Shown piece after piece: positions 16,336 to 29,103 of a stretch of DNA of 64,000 nt; position 1 is the first letter of the stretch; the number at the start of each line of letters is the position of its first letter. Below the pieces are notes generated by a model. The model saw only the letters and a list, made by a program, of their open reading frames with translations, had not been told where the DNA came from and did not search any database. Source of the stretch: Geosiphon pyriformis uo1. Taxonomy: Eukaryota; Fungi; Glomeromycota. Both the position numbers and the translations under genes were made by a program. The stretch spans positions 496,001 through 560,000 of the forward strand of contig JAAOMT010000135.1 of assembly GCA_016748015.1 (NCBI GenBank), read 5' to 3'.

Positions 16336-18509
16336 ATGTCAACGGAAATCGCCGCTCCCGCGCCTACCGTCCTTACAACAACCGCCATAGAACAAAAGGA
16401 ACCATTTGTCACCGAGAAAAAACAAACCACAAGTGGACTTAAATCATTTATTTCTGGCGGCTTTGGGGGGATAGCGGCGGTGCTCGTTGGTATGTGTTTC
16501 AGGCATTAATTAATGAGAAGAGGATGTACATAAAAGTTTGGAATTAATAAAAAGTTAAAAGCGTGAGTGAGTGAGTGAGTGAGTTAAAGAGTTAGTGAAT
16601 TTGAAAAGGAATCATACACTTGAATCGTGCTGTAGATAAAAGTTCACCCTAAAGCTTATAAAACGTATTCAGGGTTCATTTTCAGTTGTGGATAATCAAA
16701 CAAATATATATTATTATTTCTTAACAAAACCGCTATATGTATTTTAAGGTCATCCTTTTGATTTGATCAAGGTAAAACATATTTGCTCTTAAAAATCCAA
16801 ATATCTGTTTCAATTAATCAAATTTAGTTTTATTTGAATTAATGTTTCTCAGGTTCGATTACAAACGGCTCCCCCAGGCGCATACAAAGGAATTCTTGAT
16901 GTCACAAAACAGATTATTGCAAAGGATGGGTTTCGTGGGTGAGTCTTATATTTTCTTGGGCATTTTTGGAAGTCATGCCTCCTGTTTTGGGTTTTTATGT
17001 CTGCCAAGTGGCAACTAGAATCTGTTGTTGTCATTTCTTGGCTCACCACAAAGGCTTTTATTATATTGGGGTGACTACGTGTTGCTTCATATATGGATTT
17101 ATTTTCCGTGAATTGGCTCGAACAACGAAATAGCTTGTATAGAGGCATGGGACCTCCTTTGGTCGGTGTTACGCCGGTTTTTGCTTTGAGTTTTTGGGTA
17201 AGTTACTTACATACATACATACATACATTGGGTGGTTCTAGATACCTTAGAACAAACATCCTTCCAACAAATTTCCATTAGGGAATTTATATTTTTCATC
17301 AAGCCTAAATATTGTCCTGATCACCTTCGATCTTTCAAGCACTATACGTGTGCTTCTTAAATAGATTGACATTTGCAATTTGTTCAAATTCTTTAGTCAT
17401 ACGATCTCGGGAAAAAGCTCATTTATCGCTTGACGCCAAACCGCGAATTACCTACCCTTAGTTTGGGAGAAATCATGATTGCTGGAGGCTTTTCGGCAGG
17501 TCCCACCACATTATTAATGGGCCCTTTGGAAAGAATTAAAGTTCTTCTCCAAGTGCAAGGTCAAGGAGGCGAACCCAAATACAAAGGTCCTGTTGACGCT
17601 GTAAAGCAATTATATAAGGAAGGTGGCATTCGCAGCATTTTTCGAGGATCAGGTGCCACGTTATTACGTGATGTACCGGGATCCGCTGTATATTTTGGTG
17701 CTTACGAATTGACGAAACGTGCCTTGACACCCAAGGGATCCAGTCCTGATCAGCTGAATCCAGGGGCCGTGCTATTTGCCGGAGGTGAATAAATATTAAA
17801 TAATAGTCAATACCAGTAATACACGACAACGCAAACTGTAGTCTGACCTATTTTCATATTTACTTTAAAATCTACATGATTGCTTCAGGAATGGCTGGTA
17901 AGAGCTCTTGCAATTTTTTTTATTCCAAATTTATTCACTTATTTTCCGATTCTCTGGGAATTCTTTAACGCTTGTTCAAATACTTTAGGGTAAAATTGAT
18001 CATCTCGCTTCTCAGTTTTGTAATTTAATTATCTAGAGTAAAAGCTTAATTCTCATCTTTCTTTAATTATTAATTATTAAAATCACATCAAATTTATAAG
18101 GGTAACTATTTTCAATTATTCATTTTTGCTTTCATTCTCTAATTTTAAACTAATTCAAAATTCCTCATCCCAAATTCAACCTGTAAAAGGGTAAATATCA
18201 TTTTCTCAAATTATAGTTTTCAATGCGGCTATAATTTTTCTGATCTGATATGTTTCAATTCGCGACATCTTATTAGTTGCGATGTGGACTATAGCGATTC
18301 CTCCTGATACTTTAAAATCTCGCCTACAGTCAGCCCCCAGTGGTACTTACAGTGGCACGCTTGACGTTTTAAGGCATTTGCTCAAGACAGATGGTCCCGC
18401 AGCCTTGTTTAAAGGGCTTGGGCCTGCAATGCTTCGCGCATTTCCGGCTAACGCGGCCTGTTTCCTTGGAATGGAAGCTAGCTTAAATGTTATGAATAAA
18501 TTCTGGTGA
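16336..18509 (+). CDS. CRC1: Mitochondrial carnitine/acylcarnitine carrier (SLC25A20/Crc1 type), 319 aa
   Basis: Exons 16336-16489, 16749-16771, 16853-16938, 17134-17197, 17397-17784, 17889-17897, 17989, 18101, 18190, 18277-18509 (960 nt). Three Px[DE]xxK motifs (HPFDLIKVRLQ, PLERIKVLLQ, PPDTLKSRLQ) and carnitine-carrier signatures GVTPVFALSFW, RDVPGS and RAFPANAA. Confidence 0.92.
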
Positions 18510-20406
18510 ACGAGGTATTCGAAATGGTATCATTGATTCTAACTGATGAAACAATCCAAAGCTCAGGATTTAATTAATCTTTAATTTTTCCACAAGCATA
18601 AAGCAACTTAAAACTGGGGACTTGGTGACTCCAACAATAGAGAATTCTGGATTGAAGGGGAGGATAGCATTTTAAATTATATTTACATAAATTTTTTTAT
18701 TTTTTGTCTAGATCGTTGAAAATTTGGTTTCTTTGCTTCTGAATACCATCTAGCGATAGTCTTTAGGCGCAATTTTTCTCATTCATGTAAATCATGGCTA
18801 ACAGAAAATAAATATGGGTGAATTGTGCCATTTTAATCGTTCAAACCACAACAGCGTAATTTGGTTGCGATCAAATGCATTGTGACTCCTGTTAAACGAA
18901 GATGGATAAGCTAAATATTGTTTTTGATCAATTACTAAGAATTTAATTCAAGAATATATGATATTTTAATTCATACATCATTAATCTTGAAAAAAATAAT
19001 TGAAGTTTATTGATTCTTGAACATATGTGAATTATTTTAAAAACAACTATTTTTGATTTAATAAAATTTCAGATTTTTGATCAATATTTTAAGTATCTAT
19101 AAACCATATTTTAGTTGTAAATAAAAAATTTTGAGTTTTTTAAATTACAATAACAAATATATATATAAATTTTTTTTTTCTTTATCTAAAATTCTTTAAA
19201 AAAAAATGTTTTTGAAAAAAAATTATTTATTTTATATTTTTTACTGCTTTTTTTAATTGTTTATTAAAAATATCACAAATAGCAAATATTTTAGTGTGTT
19301 GTTTTTAAGTTTTTTAATATAAATTTATATTTATTTTAAAAACTCAATTATTTTTTTATAAAAGTTTAATATTGGAATGTATTTATAATTAAAATTTTAA
19401 CTAAAATAATAATTTTATTTAAATTTAAAATTTTTCTATTTAAGTATTTGTATAATAATAGAAATTTAACAATTTAATGATTTTTAATACTTAATATTTA
19501 AATTTTTTTGCTTTTTTTAACATGTTTATTCTGGTATTTTTACTTTTTTAATAAATTATTTAATTCAAAAAATTAATTTATAATTATAATATGTTTTTTA
19601 TTAAATTATTTATAATATTATAATCTTAATACAATTAAATCTTCATAAAAAAACTCTTAATAAAAGAACAATTTCTTATAAAAAACATTTTTTTATAAAA
19701 TCAATTAATTAATTACCAATTTTTTCTTTATATAAAAACAATTTATAAAGAAATAAAAACATAATTTTATCAAATATTTATTTGAAATTTATCTTTATAT
19801 AAGAACAAATATTATATATTAAATATTAATTAATAATTAAAAAAAATTAAAACATATTAAATTGATTTTATTTTAATTTTTTTTAAATTAATTTATATTA
19901 AATTTACTTTTTTTAATCTTGTTTGTTTTTATGTATAGTTATTTAATCTCTATTATATTTTAATTTAGGCTTGTTAAAACCAAATTTAATATTATTATTA
20001 TAAGTACATTTTTTAATAGACTTGCTAAATTATTATAATATCAAAATTTTTATTCAAAAAACAAAAACAAATAATAGTTAATGATATTTTTTATAAAAAA
20101 AATTGTTAATATTTCAAAAATTACTATAATATAAAACATAATAATATTGTAATTTATTTCAATTATAAATATTTAGAATTTTATATTTCTTGTTTAATTG
20201 TCTTTAAAATAATTAAAAAGCATACAAATAATTAAATATTAAAATTGATAAAATTTCAGAAAGATTTATTTAACACAAAAGTATTAAATTTCTATTATTA
20301 GACCAAATTTTAAGTTATTAAATAAAACAAATAATTACAACCACTATTAAATTTAATGATTAACTAATTAAAAAAAAAGAAAAAAAATTTTAAAAAATTA
20401 AATCAG

Positions 20407-21369
20407 TATTATCTATAAAAAAAAACAATCCAAATAATTAAAAAAATATGCTTATTATGTGAAAACACAAAATAATATAAAATAATATAAAATAACATAA
20501 AAAACACAAAATAATTAAAAATAATCAAAGATAACTAGTTATAATATAAAAAAACAAAGCAATAACTAAAATAGTAAACAATAATAAGCAATTAAAAACA
20601 ATTTTATAAAACTAGAAAATATATATAAAAAGAAATAGTTTTAGCAGATAGAAAAAAACAGACTAAACAAAAATCAAAGTAATATTTTTATCTTACTTTT
20701 AGTTTTAAAAATCTTTTTTCTCTTTTTTATTGTTTATATTTATAATTTACTAAATAAAATATTATTGTTTAATTTTATATGTTTATAATCAAAATTATCT
20801 AATTAATAAAATTTAATTAATTGTTTTTACTTATTTTTATTTCAAGTCAGATATAATTAGTATAAATCTTTTTGAAATTTTAATAATTTGGATTAATTAT
20901 TCTTGATAAAATACTAATTTTTTTATTTTTTTTTCTTTGCTTTATTTTTTTTTAATTTTTTTAATTTTTAATTTTTTTATAGAACAGCAATATTGAAAAT
21001 TGACTGTCTGAAAATAGACTTTATAATAGTCCAATAAAAAAGAAAAGCTCTTCCTAAGTTTGAATATTACTTATTGACTTATTAAAAAGATAAAAAGCTA
21101 CTGTTAAATTTTATAAACTATACTTGACTAGTTCAGAAGAAAATACAACTATAATAATATTACTACAAATATATTATTTTTGTGCTTTATAACAAAAAAA
21201 CTTAATAAATAAAACTTTAAACAAAAATTTTTTTAGAAACTAATAATTAAATTTAATATTCAGAACAATTTAACTAAAAATTTTTTTGCTTTTAATACTA
21301 AATTATGAGCACCAAATATTATAATTATATTCTATTAAGTTTATTTATAATATTTGGTGTTCTTTGTAA
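20407..21369 (+). mobile_element. Degraded 5' LTR (type A) plus primer-binding site
   Basis: Colinear with the type-A LTR at 31069-32132 (shared ttgactgtctgaaaatagactt block). Ends tataata (from ..taaca) at 21352, followed by tttggtgttctttgtaa. Confidence 0.75.
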
Positions 21370-21545
21370 AATTATAAAATTCACAGAAAAAAACACTTGG
21401 AAAACTTACAAAGTAGTAACTATTAAAATAATCAGAAAAGATTACTTGTCTTTTAGAAAAACATTATATTAACACTTTTAAAAAAATCTAAAAATCTTAA
21501 AAAAATATTCACAGCCAAAAACGATTTTCTTTACTACATATATGT

Positions 21546-24500
21546 TGTTATTAATAAAATTTAGTTAGTAATTTATATAAAATTACTCTTATAATTCTTA
21601 TTATTAATTAACATATATTATTATTATTTTAATTATATTATTAAATACTACTATCTAATTAATAATCTAATTTATAGAATACACAAATATAATAATCAAA
21701 CCATGTAATATTTCAACTTTTATAATATTTAAAAATTTGCTGAATTTATAGAAATTTATAAAATATCTTAATAGTTTACTAAAATAAAAACAAAAAAAAG
21801 ATGCAAATTTATAAACTAATATTATAATAAATTGTATAAAAAAATAGCTTTTTTTTAAAAAAATATATTTTAACTAAAATTATTTTCATTAAAAATATAT
21901 TTTTTTAATATTTATACAAATTAGTTTAATAAAAATTACATTAAAAAACAACAAAAATTATAATTATTTCACTTAAAATTTTTCAAATTTCTACTAATAT
22001 TTTGAAATTGATTAATTATTAATTTTAGTAATTTGTTAATGACTTCAAGCCTAAACAAAAAACAATTTCTTAATAAAATTTCTTTTTTTTTATTATAATT
22101 ATTAAGATAGTCTACAAATAAAATTTTTGTAAAAGAGTTGATTTTTATAGCAAAGTAAATACACATTTTTAATAAGCTTTTAAACAAACAATTTTTGAAA
22201 AAAAGTTAACTTTTACTGTAAAATAACTACATACAATAACTGTTATAAAATTGGTCATTTTATTTATAAGCCCAATAATTCAAATTATAAAAGATAATTT
22301 GAAGATAAATTCAGTTATTAAAAATTTATTCACTTTTAATAATTGTAAATTAACAGTAAAACAACATTAACATTTAAGAAAAGAGACCAAAAATCTTTAA
22401 TAATATTTAGTGCTCTTTTATAAATTAACACAACAATAACAACTTTAAAATAATAATTACATTAGATATAACAACTTTAAAGTATTATTAATTAATTTAC
22501 ATTTACTGTAAATAACAATTTGAAATCCAAGATAGAATCACAGCTTTTAAAAAAATACTCTTTTAATATATTAAAAACTGAATCAATGATTATCTCTTTA
22601 AAAACTACAATATCACAAAATTCAAGCAAAATCTTTTTAAAAATTTTATTCACTACTTAAATAAAGACCCAAAAAATATTAGTGCTAATAATTACACTAC
22701 TTACTTTGAAAAACTTGATTATAATATTATTAAATTTTGCAAAAAAAAATATTTTGCTAATTTCTAATTTGTTTTTAAACTCGAGTTTGAATTTAAAACA
22801 AACAGAAAAAGCAAAAAAAAATACTTAACCAGTTTATATAATGCTTAACACACTAAAAACAATCTTTTAACACTTATAAACATTTAAACAAAGAGCTTAT
22901 TTTAAAATATTACTTTTAATTACATTTTTCTCAGATTTATTTGTTCAAGTTTAAATATCAAATTTATTATTTAATTATTTTTTAAGACTAAAAAACTTTA
23001 CATTACTAAAAAACTCAATACAATAGTCTAAACAAATTTTTATCAGCACAAATCTTCTTGATTACTTAGCAGAAAACCAGAATAATTACTTTAACAATAT
23101 AGACAATAGTAAAAACATTTTTAAATTTATTGAGAAAAAAACTGTCAAAAACAAAAACACAAAAAAAATAACAATTACTTATATTGCAAAAATTAATGAA
23201 TTTACAGAAAAAAATATTAATACTAGTTCTTAAAAATGACTTAACAAAATATAACAAAAATACTCAAAACTATCTCTTATTTTTTTCAAAAAAACAGTTA
23301 AAGAATAATTTGAAAACTTGATTAGTTTTTTTGAATAGTTTACTAACAACAACATTTTTATTACTTTTTAAAATTGATTTTGAAATATTAAATAAGAATT
23401 CTTAGGATTTGTTATAACTTATCTTAGAAAATTCAACAAACTTTTCAAAAGAATTTGCCAATTAAAAACCAATGAATACTATTTTAATGCTTAAATTTTA
23501 GATTAATTTATTGTAAAATTAAAAAATAAATTCATCAAGAAAGTTCACTTATATGCTTCAGAAAATTTAATTATTGTTATTTAATATGTAAAAACTTATA
23601 AAATAGCCATAAAAAAAGTTAATCACACAAAACTTGATAATCTGACAATTAAAAAAACCAGCTTAACAGCTGAAAAAAAAATTAACCAACTAATTAAAAA
23701 AGTCAAGAATTATTTTACCAATTAATAATAACAGCAATAACAAAAGTACCAGCCATCTTAATAACAACTTTAAAACAACTACCTATTATTATTCAACAGC
23801 CAATCTCAAAATTGCTATTATTGTGAAATTTTAAAATATTAAAAATAAAATTGCCAAAAGATACAACAAAATCAATAATTAAAAAATAACTAATATTATT
23901 TCTAATTACAACAAATTTATTATTAATTTTTATTACCAGTTTATTATTTTTCAAGACACTAATATTAGAACAATTATTATTAATTTGCTTTACAACTAAT
24001 TTAAAAACAGTTTTAACAACTATTATCTACTTAACAATATTAAGTATTTGCAAAAAAATTGGTTTAACAAAACCAATTTTTACTTTAAAACTAATTTGCA
24101 ATTAACAACAACAAAGTTAATTTTAACAATTAATTGGTTTCTTAAAATCCAGTTTAGCAGAGATTCAATTACTTTTATACTCAACTTAGCTATTTAACAA
24201 TATTAAAAAAATCAAATTTTTAACAAACTGTACTTTTTAAAAGTAAAGTTACAACACCAAAACAAAATTTTTTTTAACAATACAATTCTATTAACAAAGA
24301 TTGCTAAAAATACTAATCTATTTAATATTTTTTTTTTTGAATTTGAAGCAAATGAATTACTATCCTTGTTTAACAATGCAGTAATTACAAAACAAAAAGT
24401 AATTACAGCTATGTATATAAAAACTAAAGTAGAAGAAAAACAAATTTATTTAATCTTAGATAGTAGATTAATGAAAATTATCATTACTTACCAGCTAATA

Positions 24501-27500
24501 CAACAACTTTAACAAAATATTGACTAACTTATATAAACAATTATTATTATAGCCAATAATATGAAAAAACACTAGTAAAAAAAATTGACAACTTCTTTTT
24601 TACAATTAATAAAATTACTATTGTAATCAAAGTATTAGTTATAAATACACTTTAATATTAAGTTCTGATTAGAAATAATTGGTTTCTTAAAACCAATACA
24701 AACTTAAATTAGAAAACCCAAAAATTAAAAATCTTATATTAAAAGCAATATATTAAAGTATTTGTTACTTGTAATACATTTAACAAATAATCAAAAAAAG
24801 CCCTGTATTTAAATTTGAAAAAAAAGAAAAAAAACCAATTATTAAAACTTATATAACTCTTAAATTAATATCTAATTAAACTGAAAAAATAAAACAAAAA
24901 TTTTTTAACAATTTTTTTATCAAAACTACTTGGTTTAAAACTCTAAATCACAATATTAAACCAGTTACTAGTAGTTAAAATAAACTTTATTTTAAACAAA
25001 AACTCAAAAAAAAGAAAGCACATATTTTTTTTAAATATAAAGATTATAACAAAAAGCTTTTATTTATGAAAGTTTACATATTACCAAAAGAGAAATATAA
25101 AATTTGCACTTGTAATTACTACAAAACCTGTTACTAAAAACGATTTGACAACTCAAAACAAAACAAAAAAATAGAATAATACATTTTGTTTTACATGCAA
25201 AAAATTACTGCTTAAAAAATACAATTAGATTAATATTGTAATAAGAAAAAAAATATGTAATCAAATCTGCCAATATGCTTTATTAATTATTAAAAAAGTT
25301 AAGAAAAAAACTTTATTTAATGCAATATACAACAATATTCTTAATAAATTATATTATTATTTTCATAATACTGAAATAATCTATAAATTAGCAATAGTTT
25401 TAATTAATAAAAGAATCCAAAAAAATGGTTATCAAATAAAAAAAGCTGTATATATTATGTATATCTTTAAAATTGCTAAATACAATTATAAAAATAAAGT
25501 AAAAACATACTGCCAAATTGTTAGTCACATTTATCTTTTTAAAGAAATTCAAATTCAACAACTAAAACAAATGAATATTCAATTATATAAAAAATTTATC
25601 ATGTTTTGTAATGTCCAATGGTGTTTAAAATACTATGTTTTTAGTATACTATTATTTACTAAGATAACAAATATGAAATCAAATTTGAAAAAGCTGAATT
25701 AAAAAAAAATTACCAATAATATTAATTTACTTATTTGAAAATCAATTAGTATTATAACTAAAATACTTTGATAACAATAATCAAAAAATTAAATCAGAGA
25801 AAGCTTACAAAGTTAATACAAAATATAATTTACAATATTTTGACAAAGATACTTTGATTCTTTAACCAAAGTTATTTATAAAAATTAATTTAAAAATTGC
25901 TTTTAAAATTTTACTAGAAGCAATAGTACAAATTGTTTCTTAATTATTATTAGCAAGCAAAAAAATCAACATTAAAAAAAAAATTATTAATACAAAATAC
26001 ACTAAAAACATTACAATTATACTACAGAATGAAACCAAAAAACTATTTAAAATTAAACATATTAAAAAAATTATTCAAGCTATTTATTTATCTTTAATTA
26101 AAATTTTGAAATTGCAATTAGTAAACAATAGAAAACAATTAAGCAAAAATAACAAAAAAATACAAAATTTTGGTTTAATAAGATAACTTACAGTTTTAAT
26201 AAATATAATTTTTAGTATACAAAACAAATCTTATCAGATTTTTAGACTTTTATAACCAACTACTATCTTATTTTTTAAAGAATATTAAAAAATTTATACT
26301 TATCCAAAATCTACTATTACTTAATAAATTTTCAAGTCTAATAAACAAATTTACAGAGAATATAATATTTTAATTTTTAATATTTATATTTCCAAAAAAA
26401 TAAAAAAATTCTTAGTTATTTTTTTTAATCTCAATAGTTATCTCATTATTTTATTAAATAGATTAGAAATCGGAATTATACATAGTAATATTTTTCAAAA
26501 TAAAACTTTTAAATTGTTTTTAATTTTTTGAAATTGTAAAACACACCTTTTTCTCAAACCCAAACATTATCTTTAACACCAAAAATTATTATATTATAGA
26601 AAAAAAACTATTTTAAATCAATATGAGTCTACTAAAATTATTATAACAAACAATTTAAGAAATTCATTATCAAATATGCTGATATTTTTGTCAAAGACAA
26701 CAATAATTTAGGAAAAACTAATATTGTTTAGCACTAAATTTACACAAAAGATACTCTATTAAAATGTCAACAAGTTTATTAAGTTTTATTTATTAGTTCT
26801 TAACAATAAGTTTATTTAACTATCAAAAAGTCTTTGGGCTTTACCAATTGTTTTAGTTAAAAAAAAAATAGAAAAATTCGATTTTGTATCAATTATTACC
26901 AATTAAATAATATTACTATTAGAAATATCTATCTATTATTAAAAATTGACAATATGTTAAATGTTTTGGAAAAAACCAAGTTTTTTTTAATATTAAACTT
27001 AAAAAATAGATATTGACAAGTTAAAACAGATCTCAAAAACTGCTTAAAAACAGTATTTATTATCCAAAAAAGAAATTATGAGTTTAATATAATATTTTTT
27101 GGATTTTGTAATATATTGGCAATATTTTAATACTTATAAATATTGTTTATAAAAAACTTTTATAATAATTAATAGTTGTATATCTTAATAACACTAATGT
27201 TTATTTTTTAATCTTTAAAGTTTATTTGATTTATTTACAAAAAGTTTTTCAACAATTATGAAAAACAAAATTAAAATTAAACATTAAAAAATATTATTTT
27301 AAAAAAACAAGCTTAATTTTTTTTGAACACATTATTAACAAAGATAAAATCTTATTTAATCCAAAAACAATTAATACTATAAAAAATTTTAAAGTTTCTA
27401 AAATACTACTAAATTAAAAAATTCACTAAATTAGCCTTTTACTATTAGAAATTCATCAAAGAATTTTCTGAAATTCTCAAATTTTTTAATTATTTGACCA

Positions 27501-27552
27501 ACAAAGATGTAAAATATTAATGAACTTTAATATAACAAAAAGCTTTTAATAT
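21546..27552 (+). mobile_element. Heavily hypermutated Ty3/Gypsy element (LTR type E 21546-22405, PBS, gag-PR-dUTPase-RT remnants)
   Basis: LTR termini tgttattaa...ttaataata; PBS tttagtgctct. Protease ttaatcttagatagtaga (LILDS) near 24450, dUTPase remnant at about 25790-26190, RT YLNN (from YLDD) at 27181 and a decayed GLASYYRKFIK at about 27425. Truncated by the LTR-B insertion. Confidence 0.8.
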
Positions 27553-29103
27553 TATTACTTATAGAAAATAGAAATCATAATAATTAGAGAAAATAGTTAA
27601 TAAAAATTAGACACAGTAGAACAAAAAATTCCAGAATTTTTCTTAACAGGAATTACAGAATTGCAGAATTTCAGAATTTTTTTTAAAAAATTAAAAAATT
27701 TTAAGAAATTTTATATAATGAGAATTATGCATATATATAGTAAAGTTAAAAGCAAAAAAAATAGTTAATTAAATTCAAATAAATATTCAGACAAATAATT
27801 TAAAACACTTTTTTTTTTACTAATAGTTATTATTATCTAAAGTAAAATCATATTAAATAAACTTACACAATTTAATCATTTACTTTATGTTATTATATAC
27901 TAATTAAAATTCTTATTAACTACATTATATTAGCAATTTATGCTAATAATATTTAATATTTAATCACACTAGAACAATAGTTTTTGATCATAGCTATTAA
28001 CAAAATACTAATTTATTTATTTTTTATTATTTTTATTATTTTTTATTTTTTATTATTTTTTTTGTTATTTACTAATTAATTAAAAAATTAAATACTAAGA
28101 TATTAATATCAAAGATAGTCTGGTAAAAGATTTATAAAACAAAAGTAATAAACTTGAAAAAAATAATAGCTTATTAAAAGAGCATAACTGTCAGATTAAA
28201 CTGGTTATTACACTGAAGAAAAAAATTTATAAAAGAAACTATTATTTGAATTTTTGTTTATTATACAAAAAACTTAACTTAAATCTTTAAAAATTAACAG
28301 CATTATTAATTACTAAATACTAAGTTATAGGTTTGTTATTTGTTTTAACATCTTAAATAATTAACTGTAATATTTAGTGCTCTTTATAAGGTCTAATTTA
28401 ACAAAGAACAAATATTATTAACAATTATTTAGAAAAGTGGCAAAATTAGAAGTATTAGAAACAAACTATTTAAAATTTGTCAAATCTTTATTCTAACAAT
28501 ATTAACAACAGTTGGAATTAACCAGCAATTATTTTCTAATTGAATTAATTTTCAATTTTTATGTTAATAAAAAAATTATATATTTTTTAAAAAAACAAAG
28601 AGATTTCAAATTAGTAAAAGAAAATTTTTACAACAAATTACTTTAATATACTAGCTTACTACAAAACTACAATTTTACTTTAATTATTACTAAAATAAAT
28701 TGTAAAATTGAAAAATACACTCAACAAAAATTTCCAATTATATTTGCAAACAAAGACAAAAACAAAATACAAATACCAGTAAGTACATCTAAATTAATAC
28801 AACTACTTAATTAAAAAAAATCCAGAATTATTTTTCTATTACATCTATTATGCTATTATATACTTAGAAGTATTATTAACATATTATTAAAATTCATATT
28901 ATTAGTAACTATAAAAACATTTATAATCCAAGTTCTATTTTAAAACCATCAAAAAAAAACCAAATTATTAAAAACTTATAGTAATTATTTTAAAGGATTT
29001 AAAACATGACCAACAATACTATTAGAACTTTGATTACTACTATTTCAACCAAATTTTGGATCCATTAATAATTAGACAGACATTAATTTAGAAAAAAAAA
29101 ATG

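Follow-up and report, generated by a model that had tools for sequence, protein, structure and literature searches.

The window considered here is the whole analysed stretch of 64,000 nt, positions 496,001-560,000 of contig JAAOMT010000135.1 in the 128-Mb assembly of Geosiphon pyriformis, an early-diverging glomeromycotan fungus whose genome is very AT-rich. The gene at 16336-18509 on its forward strand is, as judged by sequence, the Geosiphon orthologue of the fungal mitochondrial carnitine/acylcarnitine-type carrier. Its coding sequence of 960 nt is distributed over 10 coding exons, and it shows 60-70% identity with fungal proteins called carnitine transporter by their sources, the homologues being labelled carnitine transporter or SLC25A20/29 in their source records. 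Carnitine or acylcarnitine is the presumed substrate, a designation taken only from the names of these orthologues. The product belongs to the mitochondrial carriers (Pfam PF00153), as its three Mito_carr repeats with their signature motifs indicate; the profile is matched by exon 5 and by the last exon, and repeat 1 and the signatures were read in the translation. These repeats with their P-x-[DE]-x-x-[KR] signatures are the likeness to carriers of the SLC25A20 or yeast Crc1 type, and at the protein level there is nothing unusual about the correctly spliced Geosiphon product. The gene is single-copy, exon 5 having a single match in the assembly. The nearest full-length match to the carrier is 66% identical, and no closer relatives (other Archaeosporales) surfaced among the homologue matches. 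On the 3' side of the gene, about 9 kb of the window (19000-28000) is extremely AT-rich, with 13-22% G+C and a strong negative GC skew.

The gene is divided as follows, the transcript contig being a spliced contig assembled from a public run:

16336..16489 (+): coding exon 1, with the ATG at 16336 and ending in phase 1; transcript contig and frame
16490..16748 (+): intron 1, 259 nt, at an old position (VLV^GHPFDL) common to other Glomeromycota; transcript contig
16749..16771 (+): coding exon 2, 23 nt, absent in the GenBank model; transcript contig and frame
16772..16852 (+): intron 2, 81 nt, at an old position; transcript contig
16853..16938 (+): coding exon 3; transcript contig and frame
16939..17133 (+): intron 3, 195 nt, at an old position; transcript contig
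17134..17197 (+): coding exon 4; gap-free pieces of the transcript contig, and frame
17198..17396 (+): intron 4, 199 nt, at an old position (SFW^SY), containing an (ACAT)n repeat; transcript contig
17397..17784 (+): coding exon 5, 388 nt, carrier repeat 2; transcript contig and Pfam match
17785..17888 (+): intron 5, 104 nt, phase 1 in FAG^G, at an ancient position; transcript contig
17889..17897 (+): 9-nt exon GAATGGCTG, its final G being base 1 of a Gly codon; transcript contig
17898..17988 (+): new intron A, 91 nt, GTAAGA..TTTAG, with TTAAC 21 nt before the 3' end
17989 (+): 1-nt exon G, base 2 of the Gly codon; transcript contig and path enumeration
17990..18100 (+): new intron B, 111 nt, GTAAAA..ATAAG, containing an unused AG-A-GTAAAA decoy at 18035-18043
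18101 (+): 1-nt exon G, base 3 of the Gly codon; transcript contig and path enumeration
18102..18189 (+): new intron C, 88 nt, GTAACT..AAAAG
18190 (+): 1-nt exon G, base 1 of a Val codon; transcript contig and path enumeration
18191..18276 (+): new intron D, 86 nt, GTAAAT..ATTAG
18277..18514 (+): last coding exon, with the TT of Val followed by AMWTIAIPPD... and the stop codon TGA at 18507-18509; transcript contig and Pfam match
18515..18596 (+): 3'-UTR intron, 82 nt, starting 5 nt past the stop codon; contig joint with GT..AG ends

Microsatellites occur in two of the older introns, (GTGA)n at 16556-16590 in intron 1 and (ACAT)n at 17205-17232 in intron 4, and a second contig matched the intron 1 microsatellite (16556-16590) on the minus strand. 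Introns 1, 3 and 4 measure 195-259 nt, two to three times the length of the corresponding introns in Rhizophagus, Dentiscutata and Entrophospora (70-118 nt).

Within the 379-nt stretch that separates the 9-nt exon from the last coding exon, the sequence AG-G-GTAA occurs three times, at 17987-17993, 18099-18105 and 18188-18194 (+), and sets off a single exonic G at 17989, 18101 and 18190. The four introns on either side of these nucleotides all start with GTAA and finish with AG, and the coordinates and sizes (91, 111, 88 and 86 nt) that the original prediction gave for them all hold, each being a GT..AG intron. The branch-like motifs it had proposed are also present: each of the four introns has a YTRAY motif 21-37 nt from its 3' end, as do the other introns of the gene. 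Its description of the four sizes as typical for the window is only loosely right, given the 195-259 nt of three older introns of the same gene. On its two sides, each single nucleotide directly adjoins an acceptor AG and a donor GT, and the neighbouring introns are of a size that can be spliced and carry a branch motif. The last exon opens with TTGCGATGTGG at 18277, preceded by TTATTAG. Counting against a reading as three micro-exons, the acceptor is AAG and not YAG at two of the three micro-exons. The sequence AG-A-GTAAAA at 18035-18043 in intron B resembles a fourth 1-nt exon and is absent from the transcript; it would cut intron B into 47 and 63 nt, and the introns mapped in orthologues measure 55-593 nt. 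As this decoy is unused, the motif alone is insufficient to make an exon.

The clustering of three AGGGTAA in the 379-nt stretch is far beyond chance. Across both strands of the 64-kb window this heptamer occurs 6 times against 6.9 expected, and half of these occurrences fall inside the stretch. When the stretch was shuffled 50,000 times with its dinucleotides preserved, three or more AGGGT turned up in 6 of the shuffles. Some canonical path giving GGG was available in 0.7% of the shuffles, and the figure for segments elsewhere in the window was 0.4%. Genome-wide, this locus is the sole match to triple AGNGTAA arrays with 75-105 nt spacing that is not a tandem repeat, and AGGGTAA pairs are without enrichment (17 versus 64 for a control pattern).

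The RNA evidence consists of one assembled contig from one public run of one study, and contigs of this kind conceal minor isoforms. In this run, the one public run that contains the locus, 37% of the sampled words of a 2.3-kb query covering the locus were found, which is about the exonic share. The spliced contig, 2,936 nt long with a k-mer depth of 287, skips every intron at GT..AG ends, and when the contigs of the run were aligned to the window none covered the carrier introns; thus, the run appears to be cDNA in effect. The sole letter at which the contig appeared to differ from the genome is a placement effect, the end of exon 4 (TTTGG) having been set on TTTAG at 17392-17396, and with this explanation the contig is identical to the exons. 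Between window positions 17785 and 18276 it holds AATGGCTGGG; the aligner had set the G before it on the intronic G17785 and the G after it on the intronic G18276. The mRNA accordingly reads ...GGAG GAATGGCTG GGG TTGCGATG.

A test set beforehand was whether the mRNA has four G after GCT or reads GCTGTTGCG, and the contig has four. Across the gap, GCT-GGGG-TTGCG gives GCTGGGGTTGCG, which is three G more than a single 379-nt intron at 17898-18276 allows, and the mRNA thus holds nucleotides beyond what the flanking exons supply. With one intron alone, no more than three G are available (17897, 17898 and 18276), so that at least one internal exon is required. When every way of arriving at the observed mRNA from 17760-18300 was enumerated, admitting introns of 20 nt or more with GT-AG, GC-AG or AT-AC ends, exactly one solution was obtained, with introns at 17785-17888, 17898-17988, 17990-18100, 18102-18189 and 18191-18276. 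This single canonical splice solution makes G17989, G18101 and G18190 1-nt exons, and the path through three such exons that had been read from the DNA is therefore the sole canonical path to the observed mRNA.

Alternatives that depart from canonical splicing of this copy have to be weighed against this result. The four G could also be produced if one AGGGTAA contributed its GGG as one 3-nt exon (A-GGG-T), with the non-canonical inner sites GT..TA and TA..AG. Such an exon likewise yields GCTGGGGTTGCG, and the contigs are blind to which genomic G was used; it would nevertheless require two non-canonical splice sites although a fully canonical path exists, and it leaves the other two AGGGTAA, at intron-sized spacing, unexplained. 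We regard it as very unlikely. A second possibility, also highly improbable, is that the transcript was made from a copy other than the assembled one, be it a different allele, a copy in another nucleus or a paralogue missing from the assembly; in that copy GCTGGGGTT would be uninterrupted or broken up in some other way, and the assembled copy would be silent or spliced as one intron. Glomeromycota are multinucleate and the data comprise one assembly and one run, which lends this idea some ground; against it, the contig fits the exons and UTRs of the locus without a real mismatch, exon 5 has its one match in the assembly, and the three canonical G micro-exon sites in the gap would be unaccounted for. 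Finally, the stretch might be removed as one intron and three G added untemplated, by insertional editing or polymerase stuttering. Nothing beyond the extra G themselves speaks for this; the junction offers no slippery template, we know of no insertional editing of such kind in fungal nuclear mRNAs, and the three AG-G-GT sites would have to be a coincidence with a probability of about 1e-4 or less, so that this explanation is barely credible.

The protein sequence agrees with the splice path. With the three G included the product reads FAGGMAGVAMWTIAIPPD, as the orthologues do, and inclusion restores both the frame and the conserved motif. The Gly codon GGG is assembled from G17897, G17989 and G18101, that is, from three exons, and G18190 opens the next Val codon. 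The motif FAGGMAGVAMW is present in Rhizophagus, Dentiscutata, Entrophospora, Cetraspora, Umbelopsis and Mortierella, and Calcarisporiella has VAGGMAGVAMW, which differs solely at the motif start; the Geosiphon sequence GGMAGVAMW agrees with all of these only when the three G are included. The original prediction had used the first two carrier repeats as an internal control, and in both the distance from GG to the signature Pro is indeed 11 residues. The same spacing is found in 116 of the 118 homologues with a recognisable third signature, and among these homologues the Gly is present in all common variants of the motif, in line with the expectation that orthologues would carry it.

The expectation that gene predictors would miss the array is borne out by GenBank, where the single gene was entered as two separate hypothetical proteins, G9A89_013646 and G9A89_013647. 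The first (KAG9303320.1, 231 aa) lacks the 23-nt exon 2 (GHPFDLIK) and finishes in ...FAGGE by reading into intron 5. The second, of 79 aa, begins MAVAMW at an ATG within the 9-nt exon and represents the one-intron model without Gly, which is contradicted by the transcript contig. Models of 75-80 aa in Endogone and Jimgerdemannia were considered as a sign of a common split and rejected: the Endogone model begins with a contiguous MAGVAMW and that of Jimgerdemannia at MW, and neither gives a sign of micro-exons.

The intron positions in other early-diverging fungi, mapped exactly in six orthologous loci, are revealing of the history of the array. Geosiphon has all five intron positions of other Glomeromycota, and the phase 1 position at FAG^G (intron 5) also occurs in Umbelopsis and Mortierella, which identifies it as ancient. 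None of the six orthologues has an intron inside MAGVAMW, where GCT GGN GTT is continuous, and from this absence introns A-D are taken to be gains in the Geosiphon lineage. They lie at four successive bonds, GCTG^G^G^G^TT, and are the sole coding-region gains in the gene.

Isolated 1-nt exons are known, as the original prediction had stated. The 1-nt exon of Arabidopsis APC11 is experimentally established, and its authors propose sequential removal of the two introns that flank it (PMC4674806). Transcript or long-read support exists for the conserved 1-nt exon of plant VPS55 (PMC8831610), for 13 cases of single-nucleotide exons in Coprinopsis cinerea (PMC12230235) and for the 1-nt exon of Fusarium CYP621A, which also lies in an AGGGT and within a Gly codon (PMC12940212). 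A Pfam PF04133 (VPS55) profile search of the Geosiphon genome gave no match, probably because the exons are too short. All of these exons have in common with Geosiphon the one nucleotide between AG and GT, the need for it in frame and motif, and the fact that annotation misses it. However, they are lone exons between others of normal size, whereas in Geosiphon three follow one another after a 9-nt exon, the four introns occupy successive bonds and the three bases of one codon come from three separate exons. A full-text literature search found no report of consecutive 1-nt exons.

Two further kinds of complex splicing invite comparison. Ratchet points of recursive splicing are zero-length exons, AG-GTAAGT, in long introns of Drosophila and vertebrates (PMC5126111). 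The likeness to the carrier array lies in the juxtaposed 3' and 5' splice sites and the stepwise removal in which each step regenerates a usable site. No nucleotide of a ratchet point persists in the mRNA, and the introns that ratchet points divide span tens of kilobases, whereas the Geosiphon array would leave one coding G per step between pieces of about 90 nt; with one G retained at every site, the exons are not of zero length and the array does not belong to this class. In fungal stwintrons, complex intervening sequences are likewise removed by consecutive canonical reactions in obligatory succession, and in the [D1,2] type an internal intron splits the outer donor between G and T (PMC9024468, PMC5587772). 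Stwintrons of that type are nested, whereas the Geosiphon introns stand side by side with none nested, and assignment to the [D1,2] class fails on the sequence, as it would need AG followed by T and all three sites have GGTAA after AG.

From the mRNA sequence, the unique canonical path to it, the restored motif and the absence of the introns in relatives, exons 7, 8 and 9 are, with high confidence, a single G each (17989, 18101 and 18190), and the four GT-AG introns of 86-111 nt between and around them are all removed in the main mRNA. Each of introns A-D would be recognised across itself, by intron definition. The region of a donor that pairs with U1 spans -3 to +6, and in every AG-G-GTAA the 3' splice site of one intron would overlap this region of the next donor. 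With the acceptor lying inside the region of the next donor, neighbouring introns could not be engaged simultaneously, and the array would have to be cleared stepwise. Removal would then be akin to recursive splicing with one nucleotide kept per step. Either order appears workable: removal of the upstream intron would create CTGG-GTAAAA and removal of the downstream intron AAAAG-GTTGCG, and in both cases the sites of the other intron would be intact.

The consequences of incomplete inclusion can be computed from the reading frame. Skipping of one or two G leads to a stop after 9 or 13 codons, and skipping of all three gives an in-frame protein minus Gly. The 3'-UTR intron at 18515-18596 could, speculatively, expose frameshifted mRNAs to exon-junction-dependent decay. 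An extension of the three-micro-exon reading would make the array a regulated switch, in which mRNAs with a skipped G are marked for decay by the 3'-UTR intron and the level of the carrier is thereby tuned to the state of the spliceosome. The computed stops and the transcript support for an intron 5 nt past the stop codon fit this proposal. Several observations speak against it: no isoform with fewer G was seen in the transcript contigs, which conceal rare forms; a search for an RNA fold bringing the sites of the array together gave no signal (z -0.16); and the array is missing in 6 of the 6 orthologues examined, so that it is not a conserved regulatory feature. On balance a regulated switch is unlikely. 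The array is most likely a neutral or ratchet-like outcome of intron gain and not a regulatory device.

As to how the introns arose, four gains on adjacent bonds of a coding sequence of about 960 nt are not expected to be independent, and their origin would thus be linked. Introns A-D are accordingly read, from the comparison of sequences, as having probably been gained in this lineage through connected events at one run of G. Their source may have been an old serial duplication, or repeated insertion into the run of G, beside a splice site already there. Global and local alignments compared with shuffles reveal no convincing mutual similarity among the four; the pairs A-C and B-C reach p ~0.02 uncorrected, and an unrelated control pair scores as high. 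A family of introners or introner-like elements was considered as the source and rejected, since a search of the 128-Mb assembly with the 379-nt stretch gave no match other than the stretch itself.

A more far-reaching interpretation is possible, although we hold it to be rather doubtful: introns A-D may have been left by a process that was locked to this site and propagated itself, with their removal obligatorily sequential and the 3'-UTR intron serving as an NMD safeguard against skipped G. An intron might, for example, have been copied one nucleotide onward along GGGG by reverse splicing; alternatively, tandem duplication by slippage may have preceded the loss of 1 nt from the run.

The carrier gene shifts the known limit of exon recognition from one 1-nt exon to three consecutive ones. 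Here the spliceosome must use each of five donors and as many acceptors correctly in the space of 500 nt, and the array is a compact natural substrate for the study of intron definition, of steric exclusion between adjacent splice sites and of splicing order. The division of one gene into two hypothetical proteins also holds a lesson for annotation, in that gene finders and read aligners need explicit handling of micro-exons. For the evolution of this gene in the Geosiphon lineage, four lineage-specific introns at adjacent phosphodiester bonds constrain models of intron gain, and, if the process that produced them did propagate itself along the G run, the locus would be a natural record of the birth of spliceosomal introns and of 1-nt exons.
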